Shown: positions 6,334 to 62,200 of the stretch, one piece after another
How the letters are laid out: every line of letters begins with the position of its first letter
How positions within the stretch are numbered: position 1 is the first letter of the stretch
NCBI RefSeq assembly: GCF_006345805.1
Contig: NC_043010.1
Span: 18,786,001-18,850,000 of the forward strand
Length of the DNA: 64,000 nt
Direction: 5' to 3'
Origin: Octopus sinensis
Lineage: Eukaryota
Notes under the pieces: generated by a model
The model's database searches: none
The model's input: only the letters and a program-made list of their open reading frames with translations
Told to the model about the DNA's origin: nothing
Translations under genes and position numbers: made by a program

Positions 6334-6586
6334 ATGGCTGGGACATATCGACTGTCCCCTCTCAATGAAGGTGATGAGACCCTAAATTTTGCCAGTCTCT
6401 TAAGCAAGCTCCCTGGCTCTAGAGGACCCACAAGCTCAGAACTATGGGCCGTCTGTTGGCAGAGTGTGAAGATCTTAAGAGAGGTTAACAAACTTGGTGA
6501 TTTTTTCCAAACGCTTTGTATCACGCCTTCAACTCTTGCCTTTGAACTGGACACTGGTCACCTGCGGCTTCTCGATTTGTATGTAG
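6334..6586 (+). CDS. KNDC1: Exon 1, KIND1 N-terminal part
   Basis: ATG preceded by an in-frame TGA; ELWAVCWQSVKIL...LCITPSTLAF; donor G|GTGAGT, phase 1. Confidence 0.88.
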
Positions 6587-6801
6587 GTGAGTAAAACTAA
6601 TGATTCAGCTCTACAAATGTCATTGTAAGTCCATTATTTCTTGACCTTCATATCATATACAACACTGTCCGCCAATGTCCACTGTTGTTTTACTAATACC
6701 ATTGCACCATCACTCCCGCCTTAACTACCATCACAGTAACCTCATAATATAGATGTGTCAATGGAAATGTGCTTATAAGTCGGTGTGTGTGTGTGTGTGT
6801 G

Positions 6802-8589: not shown

Positions 8590-8858
8590 CAATAATAAAT
8601 CTTCGAGCGAGGTATAAACAGTAGCTGCACAAAATCGTGAAGTATATTTGCCACTTAAATGTGGCTAACCCCTAAGGGTTGATGCTACTGTAGCTTGTAG
8701 CCCCAAGAAGACATCTCCTCCAGCTGGCTGCTGACACACTATCTGTGCTCTATCAGTATTTGCAAAGGGAAGTCATCATTCCCATCTCCAGCCTGACGTG
8801 ATACACACGGACCCAAGTTTCTGGGTTTGTATGTATCATGTCCTTATTCTTTATATAT

Positions 8859-9145
8859 AAAGAATAAGGAGAAAATGAAGTGGTAAATAATAAAATTATT
8901 TATTAATTATAAAATATGACAACATCTCTGGCAGCTGTTTCAATTCAGAAATCTTTAGATAATTAATTTATAAAATTAAAATCATTATAAGATGAATCTC
9001 TTCAGAGGTAGTAAGGATATACCGATTAGAAATACATGTTGAGATAATGGCTATACACCCGTTAACAGCTGTCAGAGATGTTGTCAGATTTTATAATTAA
9101 TAAACAATTTTATTAATTACCTCTCCATTATTCTCCTTATTCTTT
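8859..9145 (-). mobile_element. Fold-back element (~80-bp inverted arms) with degenerate hammerhead core
   Basis: Arms at 8859-8940 and 9062-9145. The minus strand reads CTGAAGA gattca...tgaatt GAAAC AGCT GCC, and the other arm preserves AACAGCTGTC. Confidence 0.7.
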
Positions 9146-9339
9146 AAAAACATAAATGAACCATGATGGTTTATATGGTTACCTTATAGCTGAACTTTCT
9201 ATGGATTGGTAACTAACCAGTATTTTCATTGGGATTTATGATCCGTTAATAAGATTTATTACCTATACTTAATACTATATCTTTATTACCTATACTTAAT
9301 ACGATATCTTCACCCATTCCCTTCCGGTCATTCAAAATG

Positions 9340-9555: not shown

Positions 9556-10390
9556 AAATTCTATAATTATGAGTATAATTATAATTAGGGTTCAGCAAAA
9601 ATTTGCTTCACCACATACTGAAATTTAGAAATAGCAGTTAAAACTAATTATTTCACTACCATAAGAAAAATCTCCAAGACAGCAATACTCAACAACTCAC
9701 GCAGGTAAAGAGAAAAAAATAACGAATCCAACCAGCTTTGATTAACTGTATACGTGTTTCGGAGTTAGAGAGATGTGAAAAATGTAAAAATCATATTTCT
9801 ACTCTCTCATTCTCCTCTTCAGTACAGTAATTCAAGATTTTAAATTTGAGAGCACTGAAAAATTAACATACTCATTTGACCAAGCGACATCAAATAACAC
9901 ATATCCAACGACCAGTACTCCCGAATTCAAACAGATGGATGAGATCTCATATTCCTCCTTACTCACCCAAGTGTGATAACGAGTAAAATTCCACAGAAAA
10001 AACTGCAGTTTACTATCAGGGAGAGAATTATACTATCAATAATAATAAAGGGTAAAATTAATTAATCAATTATTAATTAATAATTTTACCAAGTACTTTG
10101 GTATGTTAAAAGAACCATTATCGGTAAACTTATACAAAAATTCTATAATTCTGAGTATAATTATAATGAGGGATTTTTTCTTATGGTAGTGAAATAGTTA
10201 GTTTTAACTGCTATTTCTAAATTTCGGTATGTGGCGAAGCAAATTTTTGCTGAACCCTAATTATAATTATACTCATAATTATAAGATTTTTATGTATAAG
10301 TTTACTGATAATGGTTCTTTTAACATACCGAACTACTTGGTAAAATTATTAATTATTAATTAATTAATTAATTTTACCCTTTATTATTAT
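9556..10390 (-). mobile_element. Retrozyme-like element: ~582-bp unit with terminal direct repeat, inverted ~220-bp arm and hammerhead
   Basis: Block X at 9556 and 10138 (direct) and ~10256-10290 (inverted). 9556-9675 is inverted at 10171-10290, and 10038-10165 is inverted at 10260-10390. Confidence 0.75.
9745..9828 (-). ncRNA. Type I hammerhead ribozyme (core intact)
   Basis: Minus strand: ACTGTA CTGAAGA GGAG..(stem II)..CTCC GAAA C AC GT A TACAGT. Perfect 6-bp stem I, all core nucleotides conserved, GUA cleavage triplet. Confidence 0.85.
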
Positions 10391-10436
10391 TATTATATTA
10401 TTATTATTATTATATTATTATTATTATTATTATTAT

Positions 10437-11384: not shown

Positions 11385-12300
11385 CTCATGATTCTGGATT
11401 CAGTCTCACTGCTTGGCACCTTGGGCAAGGATCTTCTAATGACCAAAGTCTTGTGAGTGGATTTGGTAGACTGAAACTGTTGTGTGTGTGAGTATGTGTA
11501 CATGTATGTGTGTGTGTGTGTGTGTGTGGTGTGTTGTGACTGTTGTGTGCATGTGTGTGTTGTGTGTTGTGCGTTGTGTGCATGTCTGTGTTGTGTGTGT
11601 GTGTTGTGTGTGTTTGTTGTGTGTGTGTGTGTTGTGTGTGTGTTGTGTGTGTATGTTATGTGTGTGTGTTGTGTGTGTGTTGTGTGTGTGTGTGTTATGT
11701 GTGTGTGTTGTGTGTGTGTGTGTGTTATGTGTGTGTGTTGTGTGTGTGTGTGTTATGTGTGTGTGTTGTGTGTGTGTGTGTTGTGTGTGTGTGTTATGTG
11801 TGTGTGTTGTGTGTGTATGTGTGTGTTATGTGTGTGTGTTGTGTGTGTGTTGTGTGTGTGTTATGTGTGTGTGTTGTGTGTGTATATGTGTTTGTTTCTC
11901 CTTGTCTTGATATTATGTGATAGTCATACAAGCAGTGTCATTAATTTCCAGTATCCGTGAAAGCATGTCCAGGCCATGGGGGAAATATTCCCATATATCA
12001 TGTTGAAAGCACCAGTTCTCGTCTGATCACCGAAGTTAAGCAACGTCGAACCTAGTGAGTTCTTAGATGGGTGACTGCTTGGGAAATCTAGATGCTGTAA
12101 GCATCACACATTTTAAAAGGCAATGCTCCAGCATGGTCATAGTCAAATGACTGAAACAAGTAAAAGAGTATATTTGGAAAGAGGCGAGGGTTGGCAATAG
12201 GAAGAGCACCCAGCTACAAAAAATCTGCCTCAGTGAATTCTGTCTAAAATATGCAAGCATGGAAAATGTGGACATTAAAATGATGATGATGATGATGACG
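11385..12300 (+). mobile_element. Composite SINE (family-A-like head, ~400 bp TG-rich microsatellite, family B tail) with nested insertion
   Basis: Head at 11385-11480. The tail ggaaatatt...tttggaaagaggcgagggttggc...(gat)n is split by the 11991-12172 insert. Confidence 0.65.
11991..12104 (+). pseudogene. 5S rRNA-derived sequence
   Basis: ccata..tcatgttgaaagcaccagttctcgtctgatcaccgaagttaagcaacgtcgaacctagtgagttcttagatgggtgactgcttgggaaatctagatgctgtaagcat aligns along the eukaryotic 5S consensus (A box, C box) with substitutions and a truncated 5' end. Confidence 0.88.
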
Positions 12301-14087: not shown

Positions 14088-15698
14088 CCCCACCCCACCC
14101 ACTTCCTTTGGTTCAGCTCTAATTGAGCTGGTTACATGATCAAAAGCATTCCATCCTTGACCATCCCGTCTTTTGGCAGACAACATCTACAATGTTCAAT
14201 GTTTCCTTTATATGAAACAGTAGGGATTTGGGTGTTATTTTTTGCAGGTCAAAGGCGGTTCCCTTCTTGACTTGTATTGTTGTTGTTGTTGTTTGGTTGT
14301 GACGATAATGGTGGTGGTCATGGTGGTAGTAGTAGCAATAGTAGTATTGCTGTTATTGGTAGTAGTAGCGGTGGTGGTAGTGGTGGTGGTGGTATTGGTG
14401 GTAGTGGAAGTGGTGGTAGTAGTAGTAGCAGTAGTGGTGGTGATGATGGTGGTGGTGGTAGTGTTATTAATAGGGTACTTACTGGTAATGACTGTACTGG
14501 TTGCTAAGGCCAGCTTGGTCACTGTTTTGTGTACATGGGTGTGTGTATAAGTGTGTGTGTGTGTGTGTATGTGTGTGTGTGTAGTCATAGCTGTCTGTGT
14601 GTACATGTATGAGTATGTGTATGCAGTTTTGTGAGTGAGCCAGTGTGTGTGTGTGTATGTGAATGCATTTATGTGCATATGTGTGTATATGTATGAGTGT
14701 ACATGTGTGTGTGTGTATGTCTGTGTGTGTGTGTGTGTGTGCATATGAATTATCTATGGTGCAATGTTTATATGTGTTCACGTGTGCTTTCTGATGAATA
14801 TAATGGAGAATTACTTTGGATAACGAGAGAGAGAGAGAACAGGAAAGCCACTGTCAATAATGTATTCCCAGATGGGATGGTCATGGTGAGAATATTTTCA
14901 TCACAGGTGTCCTCAGTAGGAATGACCTGGGGTTATACAACAGCAGGAAGGAAGCAGAGCACTCTAAGACATTGTTCTTACATGCACACCACACACATAC
15001 CCACAAGCACTTAACAAACCACACACACACCACGCACACAAGCACTCACACACACACACACACAAACACATACACACACACACACACACACTCATTCACA
15101 CACACAAGCACCACACCTTCAAGATTATTTTTTAAGTGTTTTACTCAGTCTTAAGTAAGATGTCTTACTGAAAGGTAAGGAAGTAACGCTGCTATAATTC
15201 CTTGTCTGTATCCATCATATATATATATGGATGTGTATATATATTGTATATGTGTGTATATATTAGATAATTGTGTATATATTGCATATATGCCTATGTC
15301 TTAGTATTGCAGGGTATATTTTGCATCTGGGGAACGGAAATTCTACATAGGGGTACTTATTTTCAGGGATAAGTTCATATGTTAAGTTATTTTTTCTGGT
15401 ACTTTCTATAAACCTTGGTAAGGCCAGATATTACCACAGGAGTCATGTATGTCTCTATATAGATGTGTATATATGTTTATGAATTAATATACACATGTGT
15501 GTGTGCGTGTGTGTATTTAAGAAGAAGTAGCCATTTTGTACCTTTCAGGGAATCATTCCTGATGATTCCCTGAAGGAATTGAAGCACTAAATAAATAGTT
15601 TTCATCCAAGTCTTGACTACCATCTTTTTCTTAATATATATAAAACCTGTACACTACTTGACACAATTTATATCTATCTATCTATCATCTATCTATCT

Positions 15699-15737
<39 letters not shown>

Positions 15738-15738
15738 T

Positions 15739-15783
<45 letters not shown>

Positions 15784-15877
15784 AAAAGGGTAGGTGGCAT
15801 ACGAGTAGGTAAATATTTATAAAAAAGAAGTTTGAAAGTGCACTATATAAGATAAATTTTAATTTTCTTAGAAATTT

Positions 15878-15971
15878 AAAAATATGGAGCACTTCATCAT
15901 CCTTGTGCAGGGGCCATGCTAATCTTCTCTGTATCATTCCAATTTTAGTATATGTAGTGCCGAAGCAATAC
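15878..15971 (-). pseudogene. RNU6: U6 snRNA copy with 12-nt internal deletion (left arm of palindrome)
   Basis: The reverse complement matches U6 from GTA.TGCTTCGG through ACAGAGAAG and TTAGCATGGCCCCTG to CCATATTTTT. It lacks CACGCAAATTCG. Confidence 0.93.
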
Positions 15972-15972
15972 T

Positions 15973-15988
15973 GTAATGCTTCGGCAGT

Positions 15989-16028
<40 letters not shown>

Positions 16029-16066
16029 GGCCCCTGGACAAGGATGATGAAGTGCTCCATATTTTT
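15973..16066 (+). pseudogene. RNU6: U6 snRNA copy with the same 12-nt deletion (right arm of palindrome)
   Basis: gtaatgcttcggcagtacatatactaaaattggaacgatacagagaagattagcatggcccctggacaaggatga[del]tgaagtgctccatattttt. There is no room for an upstream PSE/TATA promoter. Confidence 0.93.
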
Positions 16067-16116
16067 AAATTTCTAAGAAAATTAAAATTTATCTTATATA
16101 GTGGCACTTTCAAACT

Positions 16117-16172
<56 letters not shown>

Positions 16173-16178
<6 letters not shown>

Positions 16179-16294
16179 TTTATAGAAGGAGCTTCTACAG
16201 GACTAGAACTGTTTCATTCAGATGAAATCTTCAGGAAGATTTCATCTGAATGAAACAGTTCTAGTCCTGTAGAAGCTCCTTCTATAAAATAAAT
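16173..16294. repeat. Perfect palindrome, 60-bp arms, 2-nt spacer
   Basis: 16173-16232 is the exact reverse complement of 16235-16294. Confidence 0.95.
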
Positions 16295-36382: not shown

Positions 36383-36647
36383 ATCCGTAAATATAAGAGA
36401 GCTAACTTTGAATATGTTAACTCTAGTGCTAGAAATAGCTCCACCGGTATAGTCGCCAACGATAATTCCACATAGAAATAGCACTACCCTCAACGAAATG
36501 AAATTGAAATACAACTAAAAAGTGGATTAATGTTGTACAATTGTTTCTTCATCAACAAAATATGCAAATTGAGTATAATTTGCATATTTTGTTGATGAAG
36601 AAACAATTGTTAACATATTCAAAGTTAGCTCTCTTATATTTACGGAT
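36383..36647. mobile_element. Double fold-back element (39-bp outer arms, 34-bp inner palindrome)
   Basis: 36383-36421 vs 36609-36647, and 36537-36570 vs 36577-36610. A hammerhead-like remnant TGATGAAGAAACAATTGTTaaca lacks stem II. Confidence 0.7.
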
Positions 36648-39232: not shown

Positions 39233-39648
39233 CATACCTTTGTGGACCACCAGGGATCAACAGACCCCAGGTTGGGAACCTCTGCTCTAAACAATCACCA
39301 ATAATATTTATTACCAAAAATACAGAAATTATAAACGTTTTTATTAACAAAAAAACTACAAATTTGTAAATAGATGAAAAAGTTGATTTGATAGCAAAAA
39401 TAAAAGTTGTATTGGCCATACGAATATAAGCTGCTGTGCGTGTGTGTGTGTGCATGTGTGTTTGTGTTTTGTTCATGTATGTGTATCTGTATATGTGTAT
39501 ATGCATGTGTACATATGTGCTTCTTTGTATGTGCGCATGTGTGTGTGTATATCTATGTATGTGTGTGTGTATATGTATGTGTATGTGTGAGTGTATATGT
39601 AAAATTGAAATATGTATGAATAATCAAAGTGTATGTTCTTCTATCCAG

Positions 39649-40984
39649 GTGGAATGACACATCCCAGCAAGCGTACCAGGAATCGTCTGGAGAGTGGCAT
39701 CTATTTGATAGTCTTGAAATGGCCAGCCACCAAACACAGAGAAATTTTTATGCTGATTCATCAAACAAAGACCATAAGATGGAACCTCAACCAAAAGTGA
39801 CAAAATCCACACAAAACATCTCCTTGGAATCTGTCGAGCAACATAGGAATCTGTCAGGTGAAAACTGTGAACATTTTACGGATATAAGTATTCTCAAGAA
39901 TTTTGCTTATGATGAAGACGTCTGTTGTGACCAGGGTGAAGTTGTATACCTGAGATCAGATCCTGTAAATATGAAGGCTTTTCAGAAGCAGGAACTGGTT
40001 GAGAACCCTGAAAAGATTTTGCAATACGGGTTGAAGGGGGAAACATCAATGAGTTATGGTAATGATGATGATGATGATGACAATGGTGATGGTGGTGATG
40101 ATGGTGGAGGTGGAGGTAGTGCTGGTGGTGGTCTAGATGGTGTTAAGAGAAATTTTGGAGAAGATGGTCCCAAAGGTATGTTCCAGCCTGATCCTTTTCA
40201 CACCAGAAAGTTTGATAATTCTGGACCAACAGGAGATATTCAATATATACAAGGTCTAATGGAGACTTCAGACAGGTGCTTGGATCAAGGAATGGATTAT
40301 ACCAATCCAGAAAACCAAGGATCAGAAGAAGAAATTGAAGATGACTTAAGTTACAAACTTTACATCAGGGATAACTTTTTAGAAAGATCTCAATCCAGTG
40401 GCTGTTCCTTTGGGAAACATGAATTTCAAGAGATCCTCTTGTCTGACACCTCTCAGGAAGACAAGAAAGAGATAGAAACAATCCTTGAATCTGGTGCCAG
40501 TACCAAAAACGTCGAAGACACAGCAGAAGGAGTTGATATCCAGAAATTCATGCTCCCAGAAGGATCTATTGAAGATATACCACAACAATATAAGCTTGAT
40601 GTTGGAGGTTCTAACTGCAGTAAAGAAGTGAACAGGAGTGATGAGTCAAAGACATCAGAGCAGAGAAGAACAGTTCCACCAAATGAATATCAACCCAGAA
40701 AAGATTGGAAAGTGGACCAATGTTTGTTAGATGGAAATGTAAAAACCGTAGAGACAATGACGCAAGATGATGACAATCTGCAATGTTCTGGGAATGTCTT
40801 GGAGACAACAAATCTACCAGCAAAAGAATCGCAGGGTTGTACAGAGTATTACAGACCTATCACAAGAAATCGGTGGTCTGTGCTGAAGGACTATGCTGAA
40901 AGTGACAGCAGAGTTATTTACCATTCTGCAGACTTGATGAATTTCTCAAACAACATGGAAGTCAAACAATTCCTGAATGATATT
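39649..40984 (+). CDS. KNDC1: Exon 12 (1336 nt linker)
   Basis: tcCAG|GTGG ... ATT|GTATGT; phase 2 to 0. Confidence 0.83.
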
Positions 40985-41660
40985 GTATGTTGATTTTTAC
41001 TTTTTGATTTTTTAATATGTTTTATTATTTTTTAAAATTTTGTTTTTGTTTTATAAATCATTCTAATTTTTATTGCTTGTGGTGACACCTTCAGGTTGTA
41101 GAACACCAGAAACTATCTTCCAGTCAGCACAACTTGGTACAAGCACATCTGTGTCATAAGCAAGCTTGCTGCGTTATCAATAGTTTCAAGTTTGATCCCA
41201 CCTTGGGGCACCTTAGATTTTCTACCTACATAGTATGAATCAACCTAAGTTCTGTAAAGTAAATATAGGTTGATGGAAACCGTATGGAAGCCTGTTTGGT
41301 GGCCTGTATTTATTGCCCAGTTGTATACTTAATCTATGATCCAGTTAAACACACTCACTGACCCTTGGGTTGCTCTTATTAAAGTTCACACTGTTATAAG
41401 CTCTGGGATCAAATATTTAATGTTGATGACACTGTAGACTGGCTGCCCTTCCCTTTTAACCTTTTTGTAAATCATAAAAATACAACTTTGTCTTCTTACT
41501 TTGATATTCAAACATTCAAACCCTCTACTTTTCATGTCCCCAGGGGTTGATAAAATAAACTGACAGTCATGCACTGGGATTGATTGCATCATGGCAATTT
41601 TATCATATTCTTGTGTAAAATCTCCTTCAGCAAAATTCACCCTTCTAAAAGCATCTCAAT

Positions 41661-44600
41661 CAGGCCCACAAGTTGCTCTGTCCACCAGGCCCACAAGTTG
41701 CACTGTCCATCAGGCCCACAAGTTGCGCTGTCCATCAGGCCCACAAGTTGCACTGTCCATCAGGCCCACAAGTTGCACTGTCCATCAGGCCCACAAGTTG
41801 TGCTGTCCATCAGGCCCACAAGTTGCACTGTCCATCAGGCCCACAAGTTGCGCTGTCCATCAGGCCCACAAGTTGTGCTGTCCATCAGGCCCACAAGTTG
41901 CACTGTCCATCAGGCCCACAAGTTGCTCTGTCCATCAGGCCCCCAAGTTGCACTGTCCATCAGGCCCACAAGTTGCACTGTCCATCAGGCCCACAAGTTG
42001 CGCTGTCCATCAGGCCCACAAGTTGCACTGTCCATCAGGCCCACAAGTTGCACTGTCCATCAGGCCCCCAAGTTGCACTGTCCATCAGGCCCACAAGTTG
42101 CACTGTCCATCAGGCCCACAAGTTGCACTGTCCATCAGGCCCACAAGTTGCGCTGTCCATCAGGCCCCCAAGTTGCACTGTCCATCAGGCCCCCAAGTTG
42201 CACTGTCCATCAGGCCCACAAGTTACTCTGTCCATCAGGCCCACAAGTTGCGCTGTCCATCAGGCCCACAAGTTGCACTGTCCATCAGGCCCACAAGTTG
42301 CGCTGTCCATCAGGCCCACAAGTTGCACTGTCCATCAGGCCCACAAGTTGCGCTGTCCATCAGGCCCACAAGTTGCTCTGTCCATCAGGCCCACAAGTTG
42401 CACTGTCCATCAGGCCCACAAGTTGCGCTGTCCATCAGGCCCACAAGTTGCTCTGTCCATCAGGCCCACAAGTTGCACTGTCCATCAGGCCCACAAGTTG
42501 TGCTGTCCATCAGGCCCACAAGTTGCACTGTCCATCAGGCCCACAAGTTGTGCTGTCCATCAGGCCCACAAGTTGCTCTGTCCATCAGGCCCCCAAGTTG
42601 CACTGTCCATCAGGCCCACAAGTTGCACTGTCCATCAGGCCCACAAGTTGCACTGTCCATCAGGCCCACAAGTTGCACTGTCCATCAGGCCCACAAGTTG
42701 CGCTGTCCATCAGGCCCCCAAGTTACTCTGTCCATCAGGCCCACAAGTTGCACTGTCCATCAGGCCCACAAGTTGCACTGTCCATCAGGCCCACAAGTTG
42801 CACTGTCCATCAGGCCCACAAGTTGCGCTGTCCATCAGGCCCACAAGTTGCACTGTCCATCAGGCCCACAAGTTGCTCTGTCCATCAGGCCCCCAAGTTG
42901 CACTGTCCATCAGGCCCACAAGTTGCACTGTCCATCAGGCCCACAAGTTGCACTGTCCATCAGGCCCACAAGTTGTGCTGTCCATCAGGCCCACAAGTTG
43001 CACTGTCCATCAGGCCCACAAGTTGCACTGTCCATCAGGCCCACAAGTTGCACTGTCCATCAGGCCCACAAGTTGCGCTGTCCATCAGGCCCACAAGTTG
43101 CACTGTCCATCAGGCCCACAAGTTGCTCTGTCCATCAGGCCCCCAAGTTGCACTGTCCATCAGGCCCACAAGTTGCACTGTCCATCAGGCCCACAAGTTG
43201 CACTGTCCATCAGGCCCACAAGTTGTGCTGTCCATCATGCCCACAAGTTGCACTGTCCATCAGGCCCACAAGTTGCGCTGTCCATCAGGCCCACAAGTTG
43301 CTCTGTCCATCAGGCCCCCAAGTTGCACTGTCCATCAGGCCCACAAGTTGCACTGTCCATCAGGCCCACAAGTTGCACTGTCCATCAGGCCCACAAGTTG
43401 CACTGTCCATCAGGCCCACAAGTTGCGCTGTCCATCAGGCCCCCAAGTTACTCTGTCCATCAGGCCCACAAGTTGCACTGTCCATCAGGCCACAAGTTAC
43501 ACTGTCCATCAGGCCCACAAGTTGCACTGTCCATCAGGCCCACAAGTTACACTGTCCATCAGGCCCACAAGTTGCACTGTCCATCAGGCCCACAGTTACA
43601 CTGTCATCAGGCCACAAGTTGCACTGTCCATCAGGCCCACAAGTTGCACTGTCCATCAGGCCCACAAGTTACACTGTCCATCAGGCCCACAAGTTGCACT
43701 GTCCATCAGGCCCACAAGTTGCACTGTCCATCTGGCCCACAAGTGCACTGTCCATCAGGCCCCCAAGTTACACTGTCCATCAGGCCCACAAGTTGCACTG
43801 TCCATCAGGCCCACAAGTTACACTGTCCATCAGGCCCACAAGTTGCACTGTCCATCAGACCCACAAGTTGCACTGTCCATCAGGCCCACAAGTTACACTG
43901 TCCATCAGGCCCACAAGTTGCACTGTCCATCAGGCCCACAAGTTACACTGTCCATCAGGCCCCCAAGTTGCAACTGTCCATCTGGCCCACAAGTTGCGCT
44001 GTCCATCAGGCCCACAAGTTGTGCTGTCCATCAGGCCCACAAGTTGCACTGTCCATCAGGCCCACAAGTTACACTGTCCATCAGGCCCACAAGTTGCACT
44101 GTCCATCAGGCCCACAAGTTGCACTGTCCATCAGGCCCACAAGTTGCCTGTCCATCAGGCCCACAATTTGCACTGTCCATCAGGCCCCCAAGTTACTCTG
44201 TCCATCAGGCCCACAAGTTGTGCTGTCCATCAGGCCCACAAGTTGCACTGTCCATCAGGCCCACAAGTTGCACTGTCCATCAGGCCCACAAGTTACACTG
44301 TCCATCAGGCCCACAAGTTGTGCTGTCCATCAGGCCCACAAGTTGCACACTGTCCATCAGGCCCACAAGTTGCACTGTCCATCAGGCCCACAAGTTACTC
44401 TGTCCATCAGGCCCACAAGTTGTGCTGTCCATCAGGCCCACAAGTTGCACTGTCCATCAGGCCCACAAGTTGCACTGTCCATCAGGCCCACAAGTTACAC
44501 TGTCCATCAGGCCCACAAGTTGCACTGTCCATCAGGCCCACAAGTTGCACTGTCCATCAGGCCCACAAGTTGCACTGTCCATCAGGCCCACAAGTTGCAC

Positions 44601-46935
44601 TGTCCATCAGGCCCACAAGTTACACTGTCCATCAGGCCCACAAGTTGCACTGTCCATCAGGCCCACAAGTTGCACTGTCCATCAGGCCCACAAGTTACAC
44701 TGTCCATCAGGCCCACAAGTTGTGCTGTCCATCAGGCCCACAAGTTGCACTGTCCATCAGGCCCACAAGTTGCACTGTCCATCAGGCCCACAAGTTACTC
44801 TGTCCATCAGGCCCACAAGTTGTGCTGTCCATCAGGCCCACAAGTTGCACTGTCCATCAGGCCCACAAGTTGCACTGTCCATCAGGCCCACAAGTTACAC
44901 TGTCCATCAGGCCCACAAGTTGCACTGTCCATCAGGCCCACAAGTTGCACTGTCCATCAGGCCCACAAGTTACACTGTCCATCAGGCCCACAAGTTGTGC
45001 TGTCCATCAGGCCCACAAGTTGTGCTGTCCATCAGGCCCACAAGTTACACTGTCCATCAGGCCCACAAGTTGCACTGTCCATCAGGCCCACAAGTTGCAC
45101 TGTCCATCAGGCCCACAAGTTACTCTGTCCATCAGGCCCACAAGTTGCACTGTCCATCAGGCCCACAAGTTGCGCTGTCCATCAGGCCCACAAGTTGTGC
45201 TGTCCATCAGGCCCACAAGTTGCACTGTCCATCAGGCCCACAAGTTACACTGTCCATCAGGCCCACAAGTTGCACTGTCCATCAGGCCCACAAGTTGCAC
45301 TGTCCATCAGGCCCACAAGTTGCACTGTCCATCAGGCCCACAAGTTGCACTGTCCATCTGGCCCACAAGTTGCACTGTCCATCAGGCCCCCAAGTTACTC
45401 TGTCCATCAGGCCCACAAGTTGTGCTGTCCATCAGGCCCCCAAGTTACTCTGTCCATCAGGCCCACAAGTTGTGCTGTCCATCAGGCCCACAAGTTGCAC
45501 TGTCCATCAGGCCCACAAGTTGCACTGTCCATCAGGCCCACAAGTTACACTGTCCATCAGGCCCACAAGTTGCACTGTCCATCAGGCCCACAAGTTGCAC
45601 TGTCCATCAGGCCCACAAGTTACACTGTCAATCAGGCCCACAAGTTGCACTGTCCATCAGGCCCACAAGTTGCACTGTCCATCAGGCCCACAAGTTGCAC
45701 TGTCCATCAGGCCCACAAGTTACACTGTCCATCAGGCCCACAAGTTGCACTGTCCATCAGGCCCACAAGTTGCACTGTCCATCAGGCCCACAAGTTACAC
45801 TGTCAATCAGGCCCACAAGTTGCACTGTCCATCAGGCCCACAAGTTGCACTGTCCATCAGGCCCACAAGTTGCGCTGTCCATCAGGCCCCCAAGTTACTC
45901 TGTCCATCAGGCCCACAAGTTGTGCTGTCCATCAGGCCCACAAGTTGCACTGTCCATCAGGCCCACAAGTTACACTGTCCATCAGGCCCACAAGTTGCAC
46001 TGTCCATCAGGCCCACAAGTTACACTGTCCATCAGGCCCACAAGTTGCACTGTCCATCAGGCCCACAAGTTGCACTGTCCATCAGGCCCACAAGTTGCAC
46101 TGTCCATCAGGCCCACAAGTTGCACTGTCCATCAGGCCCACAAGTTACACTGTCCATCAGGCCCACAAGTTGCACTGTCCATCAGGCCCACAAGTTGCAC
46201 TGTCCATCTGGCCCACAAGTTGCACTGTCCATCTGGCCCACAAGTTGCACTGTCCATCAGGCCCACAAGTTGCACTGTCCATCAGGCCCACAAGTTGCGC
46301 TGTCCATCAGGCCCCCAAGTTACTCTGTCCATCAGGCCCACAAGTTGTGCTGTCCATCAGGCCCACAAGTTGCACTGTCCATCAGGCCCACAAGTTGCAC
46401 TGTCCATCAGGCCCACAAGTTACACTGTCCATCAGGCCCACAAGTTGCACTGTCCATCAGGCCCACAAGTTGCACTGTCCATCTGGCCCACAAGTTGCAC
46501 TGTCCATCTGGCCCACAAGTTACACTGTCCATCAGGCCCACAAGTTGCACTGTCCATCAGGCCCACAAGTTGCACTGTCCATCTGGCCCACAAGTTGCAC
46601 TGTCCATCAGGCCCACAAGTTGCACTGTCCATCAGGCCCACAAGTTGCACTGTCCATCAGGCCCACAAGTTGCACTGTCCATCTGGCCCACAAGTTGCAC
46701 TGTCCATCTGGCCCACAAGTTGCGCTGTCCATCAGGCCCACAAGTTGTGCTGTCCATCAGGCCCCCAAGTTACTCTGTCCATCAGGCCCACAAGTTGCAC
46801 TGTCCATCTGGCCCACAAGTTGCGCTGTCCATCAGGCCCACAAGTTGTGCTGTCCATCAGGCCCACAAGTTGCACTGTCCATCAGGCCCACAAGTTGCAC
46901 TGTCCATCAGGCCCACAAGTTGCACTGTCCATCAG
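41661..46935. repeat. 25-bp satellite array, ~210 copies (CAGGCCCACAAGTTGCACTGTCCAT)
   Basis: Direct tandem array inside intron 12. The 25-aa periodicity in all three plus frames equals 3 units. Confidence 0.98.
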
Positions 46936-47883: not shown

Positions 47884-47887
47884 CACT

Positions 47888-48123
47888 TATAAAAGGAATG
47901 ACCACTTAGTGGACTCCTAATATGCTAAAGGTAGACCCCATATGGTCTGACCACTAAGAAAAATTGTTCTCAAGAAAATTTGGCAAATGCCAGAATGTAA
48001 AGTGAGCAAGACAAATAAAAAGATACAAAATATAGTGATTAGAACAATTTTTCTTAGTGGTCAGACCATATTGACTTTACCTTTAGCATATTAGAAGTCC
48101 ACCTAGTGGTCATTCCTCTTATA
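47888..48123. mobile_element. Fold-back/MITE with ~80-bp inverted arms
   Basis: 47888-47969 vs 48042-48123, TA-flanked; a partial copy lies at 49103-49160. Confidence 0.75.
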
Positions 48124-48232
48124 TGTATGTAATATAATTTTCTGAATCTTTAGATTTTTTTCAATATGCTAGGACACTGGTTTAAATTGATATTAATCTA
48201 ATTAATATCAATTTTTACCTTATTATATATAT

Positions 48233-62074: not shown

Positions 62075-62200
62075 CATAAAACTCAACAATTTTGTTAAAA
62101 ATGGAGAAGAGATGTCAAAATACATAAGAGAATTAAAAATTTTCTTATATATTTTAACACCTTTTCTTCTCCATTTTTAACAAAATTGTTGAGTTTTATG
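62075..62200. repeat. Palindrome (~36-bp perfect outer arms, imperfect inner stem)
   Basis: cataaaactcaacaattttgttaaaaatggagaaga / tcttctccatttttaacaaaattgttgagttttatg. Confidence 0.88.

Follow-up and report, generated by a model that had tools for sequence, protein, structure and literature searches.

A head-to-head pair of U6 small nuclear RNA pseudogenes at a (TA)n tract in Octopus sinensis, with features of a palindromic RNA-templated retrocopy

How do two copies of the U6 small nuclear RNA (snRNA) come to face each other with a single base between their first nucleotides? This question is raised by a palindrome in a stretch of 64,000 nucleotides (nt) from Octopus sinensis (NCBI RefSeq assembly GCF_006345805.1, contig NC_043010.1, positions 18,786,001 to 18,850,000 of the forward strand), which is called the window in this work and whose numbering is used throughout. 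The palindrome consists of two U6 pseudogenes on opposite strands, each prolonged by a short 3′ extension, and lies between two (TA)n tracts. We interpret it as a non-functional palindromic retrocopy of a read-through transcript of a U6 variant, generated in one event at a (TA)n tract inside a probable intron, and we consider this origin probable by a modest measure. The locus is most likely a variant of known retrocopy biology, and it is not seen as revolutionary.

A repeat finder located the inverted repeat at 15841–15971 and 15973–16103, with arms 97% complementary and a spacer of 1 nt (T15972). When mismatches were tolerated, a centre-extension scan enlarged the arms to 144 nt each, at 15828–15971 on the minus strand and 15973–16116 on the plus strand. 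The search with the Rfam model of U6 (RF00026) at the gathering threshold returned two matches in the 64 kb, and both are arms of the palindrome: the left one at 15878–15971 (−), with 87.5 bits and E 5.5e-21, and the right one at 15973–16066 (+), with 85.4 bits and E 2.5e-20, each covering model positions 1–105. Model position 1 corresponds to G15971 on the minus strand and to G15973 on the plus strand. Both adjoin T15972 (an A on the other strand), the centre of symmetry between the two +1 G residues, and both represent the precise 5′ end of U6. The initial annotation of this DNA had described two arms of about 150 bp around a single T, each starting at the first G of U6, carrying the same 12-nt deletion, keeping the ACAGAGA box and the AGC triad, running about 56 nt beyond the oligo-T, and differing from the other arm at about five positions. 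All of this was recovered here. The deletion common to both arms removes model positions 75–86 in the Rfam alignment (junction between 15897 and 15896 in the left arm, and between 16047 and 16048 in the right arm), the ACAGAGA box (arm positions 40–46) and the AGC triad (52–54) are intact in both, and an intact T5 terminator occupies arm positions 90–94 (15878–15882 and 16062–16066), after which the extension is ended by the next T-run.

The base-by-base alignment of one arm with the other over 150 nt revealed four substitutions (arm positions 4, 15, 36 and 65), of which one is a CpG transition, and a single 1-nt indel. Three of the four substitutions, at 15907, 15957, 15968 / 15976, 15987, 16037, are complementary transversions (A/T or G/C), so that the plus strand has the same base at the mirror positions, which may be due to chance (roughly p = 0.03). 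Two of these three, arm positions 4 and 15, pair with each other in the 5′ stem of U6. In relation to canonical U6, both arms share the 12-nt deletion, which has TGA microhomology at its flanks, about three substitutions, and the loss of 1 nt in the 5′ stem, where an intact U6 gene discussed below reads GTACTTGCTTCGGCAGTAC.

The 3′ extensions are at 15821–15877 (−, arm positions 95–151, ending in T6 at 15821–15826) and at 16067–16122 (+, ending in T4 at 16119–16122, with one extra G near 16102 in comparison with the left arm). A stretch of 35 nt of the extension is identical between the arms and occurs nowhere else in the window, where no occurrence is expected by chance. The outer ends are unequal. 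The right arm ends in CTTCTTTT and the T-run 16119–16122, and passes without a gap into (TA)28 (16122–16178). Outward from the left arm are found the T6, a TA-like segment of 11 nt, the 22-mer CCTACTCGTATGCCACCTACCC, which is unique in the window, and a third oligo-T run, T5 (15783–15787); this left-only block of about 38 nt (15783–15820, −) could be a longer read-through, a one-sided tail or filler DNA. The (TA)n tract on this side, of about 18 units (15743–15779), comes after a (TATC)n tract (15671–15742). Each (TA)n tract may be an outer boundary or the target, and the right one is possibly a direct duplicate of the left one. Both are followed by TTTAT, which is weak evidence, compatible with a long target duplication as well as with chance in AT-rich DNA. 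Runs of at least four T bound the unique sequence of both arms (arm positions 147–150 and 185–189). The background for such a run to lie within 14 nt of a random point of the window is 0.07, and for both arms about 0.005.

Are the arms functional genes? Upstream of each +1 there is one T and then the other arm in antisense, without the external promoter of a U6 gene (a proximal sequence element near −55 and a TATA box near −30). In addition, the 3′ domain, which is intact in a functional gene, is broken by the 12-nt deletion, and there are changes in the 5′ stem and in the 3′ region. Since each arm has only the other arm upstream, neither can be a gene, as had already been proposed, and the absent upstream sequence together with the loss of part of the 3′ domain rules out this possibility.

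Genuine pairs of U6 genes have another appearance. An snRNA cluster (L005; ENA ERZ17089005, 153–1194) contains U5, U2 and U6 on one strand and a second, divergent U6 located 80 nt away. Both U6 genes of this pair are intact, each has GTT(T)ATGG(C/T)CC at −60 to −69, and the two promoters appear to be interdigitated within the 80 nt. In Lupinus albus (L006; CM020997.1, 1156–1784), two intact convergent U6 genes are found in an inverted repeat with arms of 172 nt. These arms take in 66 nt upstream of each +1, and the pair is therefore a DNA-level inverted gene duplication; its arms carry promoters, whereas the octopus arms have none. A gene model that spans both Lupinus albus genes gives rise to a spurious protein (P0017), and tail-to-tail U6 open reading frames (ORFs) of the same kind were observed in two other entries (P0011 and P0021; Lentinula edodes).

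If the arms are not genes, what determined the limits of the unit? T-runs are terminators of RNA polymerase III (Pol III), and the outer ends of the arms at runs of at least four T thus fit Pol III-terminated templates. The unit is bounded at the 5′ side by the U6 start site of Pol III, and at the 3′ side by the second terminator on one arm and by the third on the other. A random breakpoint in a unit of about 150 nt would fall no more than 1 nt from +1 with a chance of about 2%. The initial annotation had suggested an RNA-templated fold-back synthesis of a mobile unit formed by U6, an AT-rich body and (TA)n. Of this proposal, the RNA-templated part stands, as it best accounts for the symmetry at the 5′ end of the transcript, and strict hairpin self-priming does not: both 5′ stem-loops are complete with 1 nt between them, and a one-base turn is sterically incompatible with that route. 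The blunt +1/T/+1 junction is in better agreement with a template jump from end to end, or with two cDNA ends having been joined. The AT-rich body also lost ground, as the extension stops at oligo-T runs and is more simply explained as sequence downstream of a U6-variant source gene into which Pol III read through. Such a flank had been named as a finding that would refute an RNA origin, and it does not refute it.

Under the one-step interpretation, the events may have been as follows. A U6-variant gene would be transcribed by Pol III from +1 past the T5 to the next T-run (arm positions 147–151) or to the third (185–189). With a break in the self-complementary (TA)n as the priming site, the reverse transcriptase of a cellular retroelement would then copy this RNA up to its 5′ end. 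There the direction would be reversed, either by the addition of one untemplated nucleotide and a jump onto a second full-length cDNA, which was primed from the opposite side of the break and offers its 3′ end, or by the joining of two full-length cDNA ends. Finally, the shorter arm would be sealed to the target by TA microhomology. Since (TA)n is self-complementary, both 3′ ends of the break could prime on the same RNA tail, which makes two converging cDNAs plausible. With the published calibration for octopus, in which a Jukes-Cantor distance of 0.065 corresponds to about 18 million years (PMC13282606), the pairwise divergence of 2.7% between the arms suggests an age of a few million years if no gene conversion occurred.

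Can a head-to-head U6 dimer be formed in a single insertion at all? The ORFs returned by a protein-level search, described below, were scanned for antisense U6 followed by sense U6, and this revealed an independent case (L004; ENA ERZ25084437 ctg4824, a 1.6-Mb contig; 1779–2002) in an unrelated eukaryote with plant-type U6. On its opposite strands are two U6 matches over the full model, with an overlap of 15 nt; the arms have 76 nt at 99% identity, with 31 nt between them. The insert of 182 nt lies between perfect direct repeats of 21 nt (AGACATGTCAGCCATTGGCAC), and this duplication around the inverted dimer indicates a single insertion event. The arm adjoining one repeat copy ends in oligo-T, and the other, cut short near U6 position 97, is joined by TTGG(C/T)AC microhomology. 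Self-priming leads to one complete copy and one without the stem-loop, as seen here, and the structure would be that expected of a first-strand cDNA folding on the complement of the U6 5′ stem-loop. The case looks like a textbook example of a retrocopy made by hairpin self-priming, and shows that a single insertion can yield a head-to-head U6 dimer. In the literature searched, no description of structures like this dimer was found, and the searches for U6 in octopus and for head-to-head U6 pseudogenes gave nothing specific.

The dimer resembles the octopus locus in having inverted U6 copies that meet at their 5′ ends, no promoter, one longer arm, which reaches an oligo-T, and a shorter arm joined by microhomology. 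They differ in that the dimer has a single shared 5′ stem-loop and a clear duplication, while in octopus both stem-loops are complete and separated by 1 nt; the extension of 56 nt on the arms and the (TA)n flanks are found only in the octopus locus.

Several observations weigh against the one-step interpretation. The 12-nt deletion, the 1-nt loss in the 5′ stem and about three substitutions are common to both arms, so that either the template was already degenerate or gene conversion between the arms is needed. These shared lesions may come from a promoter-bearing U6-variant source, from homogenisation by gene conversion, or from a decayed single retrocopy later duplicated as DNA, and a long single-copy phase followed by a DNA-level duplication explains them more simply. 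The turn of 1 nt does not result from simple hairpin self-priming, and a template jump or a second cDNA would have to be added. As both ends lie in (TA)n, no unambiguous target-site duplication is readable, the shared TTTAT being weak. No retroelement sequence (reverse transcriptase, GIY-YIG or hammerhead) was found in or beside the unit; there was no hammerhead or other relevant Rfam match at E≤1, and no reverse transcriptase or endonuclease domain in the ORFs scanned. The Naiad clade of Penelope-like elements, which prefers (TA)n, has been reported as long inactive in cephalopods, where it survives only as old remnants. No source gene and no second copy turned up in the 64-kb window or in the collections searched, which hold no octopus DNA.

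The first alternative takes the shared lesions as its starting point. In a two-step origin, an old single U6 retrocopy in (TA)n decayed, and a later template switch or fold-back at the DNA level produced the inverted copy. The fold-back would be nucleated by the (TA)n abutting the 5′ end of the retrocopy, and the switch back would take place at the first TA-like stretch. Tracts of (TA)n are prone to hairpin formation, and they are frequent in the window, with 32 of them in 64 kb of very microsatellite-rich sequence. This origin accounts for the shared deletion and substitutions with no need for gene conversion or for a transcribed source that was degenerate, and also for the presence of (TA)n at both outer ends, with the right arm stopping at TTTTATA and the left one continuing. 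However, it predicts a central (TA)k hairpin, and the centre is a lone T, which is no multiple of the repeat unit; it needs a breakpoint that coincides to the nucleotide with the 5′ boundary of the retrocopy; and the independent dimer described above shows that one insertion is sufficient. We regard the two-step origin as the main alternative, to be taken seriously, and still as improbable.

Is the unit instead a member of a dispersed family? A U6-headed family similar to short interspersed elements (SINEs), with a U6 head, a short body and a TA-rich tail, could be integrated into (TA)n, habitually as head-to-head dimers, by a partner retroelement. SINEs headed by small RNAs do exist in the octopus genome. 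One of them is in the window, at 11992–12300: a head similar to 5S rRNA and trimmed at both ends (Rfam 62.7 bits), the body of the common octopus SINE with the core GGTTGGC..TAGGAAG.GCA.CCAGCT, and a (GAT)n tail, which fits the '5S' SINE class annotated in Octopus vulgaris. The annotation of the same species includes the SINE classes 'U' (369 kb) and 'U-L1' (53 kb), and the two recent insertions of U-L1, with 353 bp in total, indicate a unit of about 180–195 bp, which is the right size, although the match is one of size only (PMC13282606). The template, already a degenerate U6, is also what a family master copy would be.

On the other side, a sequence search and a permissive Rfam search revealed no second copy of the U6 unit or of its extension, and no further U6, in the window. 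A pseudo-protein made from the two open frames over the arm, extension and centre was compared with an index of 5.8 billion proteins; the 535 ORFs retrieved are generic U6-derived ones, and none has the octopus extension. Two variants that had looked promising (P0006 and P0009) are U6 copies of mammals, in contexts of the L1 type. The extension, the junction of deletion and extension, and a generic head-to-head U6 pattern were all absent from metagenome, prokaryote and viral collections without octopus DNA, and the exact sequences of three small ORFs of the palindrome are not on record in public assemblies. Negative results on copy number outside the window carry little weight, since the source species is absent from the collections searched. 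Also against a family are the Pol III terminators that bound the extension, as in the flank of a gene, the heads of known SINEU elements, which are U1 or U2 and not U6, and the lack of a reported internal promoter in U6, so that copies should be dead on arrival (PMC4494074). A dispersed family is thus unlikely. Less likely again is its strongest form, in which octopus genomes would harbour a Pol III-transcribed U6-headed family integrated by a microsatellite-targeting reverse transcriptase as obligate head-to-head dimers, seeding hairpins of double-stranded RNA in introns. If true, introns would gain long, nearly perfect double-stranded spliceosomal-RNA sequence as substrates for A-to-I editing or small-RNA pathways, and the +1/N/+1 junction would be a direct footprint of the mechanism behind the inverted copies of Penelope-like elements.

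A DNA transposon was also considered, in the form of a miniature inverted-repeat transposable element (MITE) with long terminal inverted repeats (TIRs), or a foldback element, built of U6-derived sequence and with TA as target. The window contains several palindromic MITE-like elements, some of them abutting (TA)n and one flanked by TA on both sides, and in octopus there is activity of Tc1-mariner elements and MITEs. In a trivial sense the arms are 'TIRs'; however, they have no recognisable terminal motif, no clean TA duplication is readable within (TA)n, and there is no other copy in the window. Such an element gives no reason for a centre at the +1 of U6 or for arms ending at T-runs, and in sequence the unit does not resemble the window's other palindromic elements (all p > 0.1 against shuffled controls), so that this origin is very unlikely. 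As for an assembly or library artefact, with a fold-back chimeric read in the consensus, palindromes beside low-complexity (TA)n are hard to assemble, inverted structures of the Penelope-like type trouble assemblies, and a second palindrome with 100% identical arms is directly adjacent (16173–16294), but a chimeric copy would be identical, and the four substitutions (one of them a CpG transition), the indel and the unequal outer block of about 38 nt between the arms point to real evolutionary divergence instead of a read-level fold-back, which leaves the artefact hardly credible.

The adjacent palindrome has arms of 60 nt, 100% complementary, with a spacer of 2 nt, and is placed at the end of the bounding (TA)28. 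It is unique in the window, has no sequence relation to the U6 unit, and was miscalled as a tRNA by ARAGORN. A young element of MITE-like or hairpin type is probable, and with its perfect identity an artefact is also conceivable. Another long-TIR MITE-like element (36386–36647) adjoins (TA)n and is flanked by TA on either side; the arms read CCGTAAATATAAGAGAGCTAACTTTGAATATGTTAAC...AATTTGCA, with an insert of about 115 nt in the left arm and a tight core palindrome at 36534–36613. Four older self-complementary blocks of 126–370 nt and 73–87% identity (8858–9146, 10038–10391, 47885–48125 and 62075–62200) look like long-TIR MITEs, palindromic repeats being regular in the octopus genome. A mechanism or 3′ motif common to the three tight palindromes was discarded, as their pairwise similarity is not above that of shuffled controls and the others look like ordinary TA-targeting long-TIR MITEs. 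A match of the extension at 62125–62151 is weak and not significant, and corresponds to the AT-rich centre of another palindrome.

Where does the U6 palindrome lie in relation to the genes of the window? On the plus strand, the ORF piece 6334–6591 is a conserved, Met-initiated first coding exon, whose homologues from other animals share LNEGDE...ELWAVC...FQTLCITP...LAFD. We take it to be the start of the KIND domain of a RasGEF of the KNDC1/v-KIND type, a name that was not confirmed by the Pfam and PDB searches. Further long plus-strand exons are found at 20.4–22.4, 31–35.4 and 39.6–41 kb; for the exon 39629–40993 the best named relative is a protein of Octopus bimaculoides, with 89% identity. 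Neither the putative host-gene exons nor the retroelement-like peptides had a significant match in sequence searches of Pfam and PDB. With plus-strand exons on either side, the palindrome lies most probably in an intron of this gene. The element has today no demonstrated function. The initial annotation expected a long hairpin in the intronic RNA of the host, and the folding agrees with it: the stretch of 300 nt folds as one hairpin both as RNA (−231.7 kcal/mol, z = −37) and as DNA (−159.4 kcal/mol, z = −34), and in the host pre-mRNA it would be predicted to form a hairpin of about 145 bp.

In addition to octopus SINE copies, the 5S-headed SINE and the palindromic MITE-like elements, the window includes a minisatellite of 5.3 kb (41659–46935), composed of 211 copies of the 25-nt unit ATCAGGCCCACAAGTTGCACTGTCC with 94% identity. 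This minisatellite is open in three frames, which generates spurious ORFs of about 1,800 amino acids. At 459–1750, peptide motifs typical of the reverse transcriptase and integrase of long terminal repeat (LTR) retrotransposons (for example HSDRGPAF and NGQVERLNGTLW) are present in broken frames, and these short peptide pieces gave no significant match in Pfam.

If the one-step origin is true, the locus preserves, in small and entirely readable form, the turn of a reverse transcriptase at its template's end, with both ends of the RNA independently known, from the U6 +1 and from the Pol III T-runs. Its usefulness comes from the fact that the inverted-copy step in Penelope-like and some other retroelements has no established mechanism (PMC8557442), and elements several kb in length rarely show this step so cleanly. 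Together with the independent dimer, it suggests that there may be two routes to palindromes, hairpin self-priming on the U6 5′ stem-loop and a blunt end-to-end jump, each represented by one locus. Such loci put hairpins of about 145 bp into the pre-mRNAs of a lineage with heavy RNA editing, and these palindromes are traps for assembly and for the annotation of snRNA genes. If only a DNA-level duplication was involved, the locus is an ordinary curiosity.

Which known systems does the locus resemble? U6 is the snRNA most often copied by the long interspersed element (LINE) machinery, always to the exact 5′ end, and the L1, L2 and RTE clades share, as a general property, the formation of template-switch chimeras with full-length U6 at the 5′ end (PMC4476161). 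U6/LINE products are also formed by RNA ligation (PMC6789731), and L1, L2 and RTE elements are abundant and recently active in octopus (PMC13282606). The octopus locus is similar to U6 retropseudogenes and U6/LINE chimeras in its exact 5′ end, in the absence of a promoter and in being, as we interpret it, an RNA-templated by-product of a retroelement reverse transcriptase, and in the chimeras, as in the octopus unit, the U6 part sits at the 5′ side of the inserted unit. On the other hand, known U6 retrocopies are single, are followed by poly(A) or a 5′-truncated LINE, and have clear target duplications, whereas in octopus two full units are head to head. The 3′ part of these units has neither poly(A) nor LINE sequence: after the T5 there are 56 nt of AT-rich sequence, a T-run and (TA)n, without an A-tract, with Pol III T-runs as bounds and (TA)n as target.

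The octopus unit also resembles the SINEU elements, which have an snRNA head, an unrelated 3′ sequence, an internal oligo-T and no known internal promoter (PMC4494074), but these have U1 or U2 heads, form multi-copy families and carry LINE-matched tails, none of which was seen for the octopus unit. The DNA transposon Dada-U6, which generates duplications of 6–7 bp and splits U6 at CTTGCGCAG into direct halves, was rejected, as the site is uninterrupted in the left and right arms (CTGCACAAG / CTGGACAAG) and the arms are inverted whole copies. In the twin priming of L1, as in the event proposed here, reverse transcription starts from both 3′ ends of a staggered break and opposite orientations result. 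However, in twin priming a part of one RNA copy is inverted and nothing is duplicated, and the octopus unit is present twice as a whole.

The architecture matches that of the endonuclease-positive Penelope-like elements described by Craig et al.: the inverted copy adjoins the 5′ end, the target is a microsatellite, one end only bears an extra block, and duplications are not readable (PMC8557442). These elements mobilise host RNAs in trans, and the mechanism that makes their inverted copies is stated as unknown (PMC8557442); in Octopus vulgaris they represent 6.83% of the genome, with 336 recent insertions (PMC13282606). The octopus locus likewise has head-to-head copies, separated by 1 nt and flanked at either side by (TA)n, and a left-only block of about 38 nt, which may correspond to the tail of 30–40 bp of Penelope-like elements. 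It differs in having no reverse transcriptase/GIY-YIG ORF, pseudo-LTR or hammerhead, being composed only of U6 and a non-coding extension of 56–95 nt, and in that both copies are full length, while the inverted copies of Penelope-like elements are usually 5′-truncated. From this comparison, the locus may be considered to work like a Penelope-type insertion, in the sense of an architectural resemblance and not of family membership.

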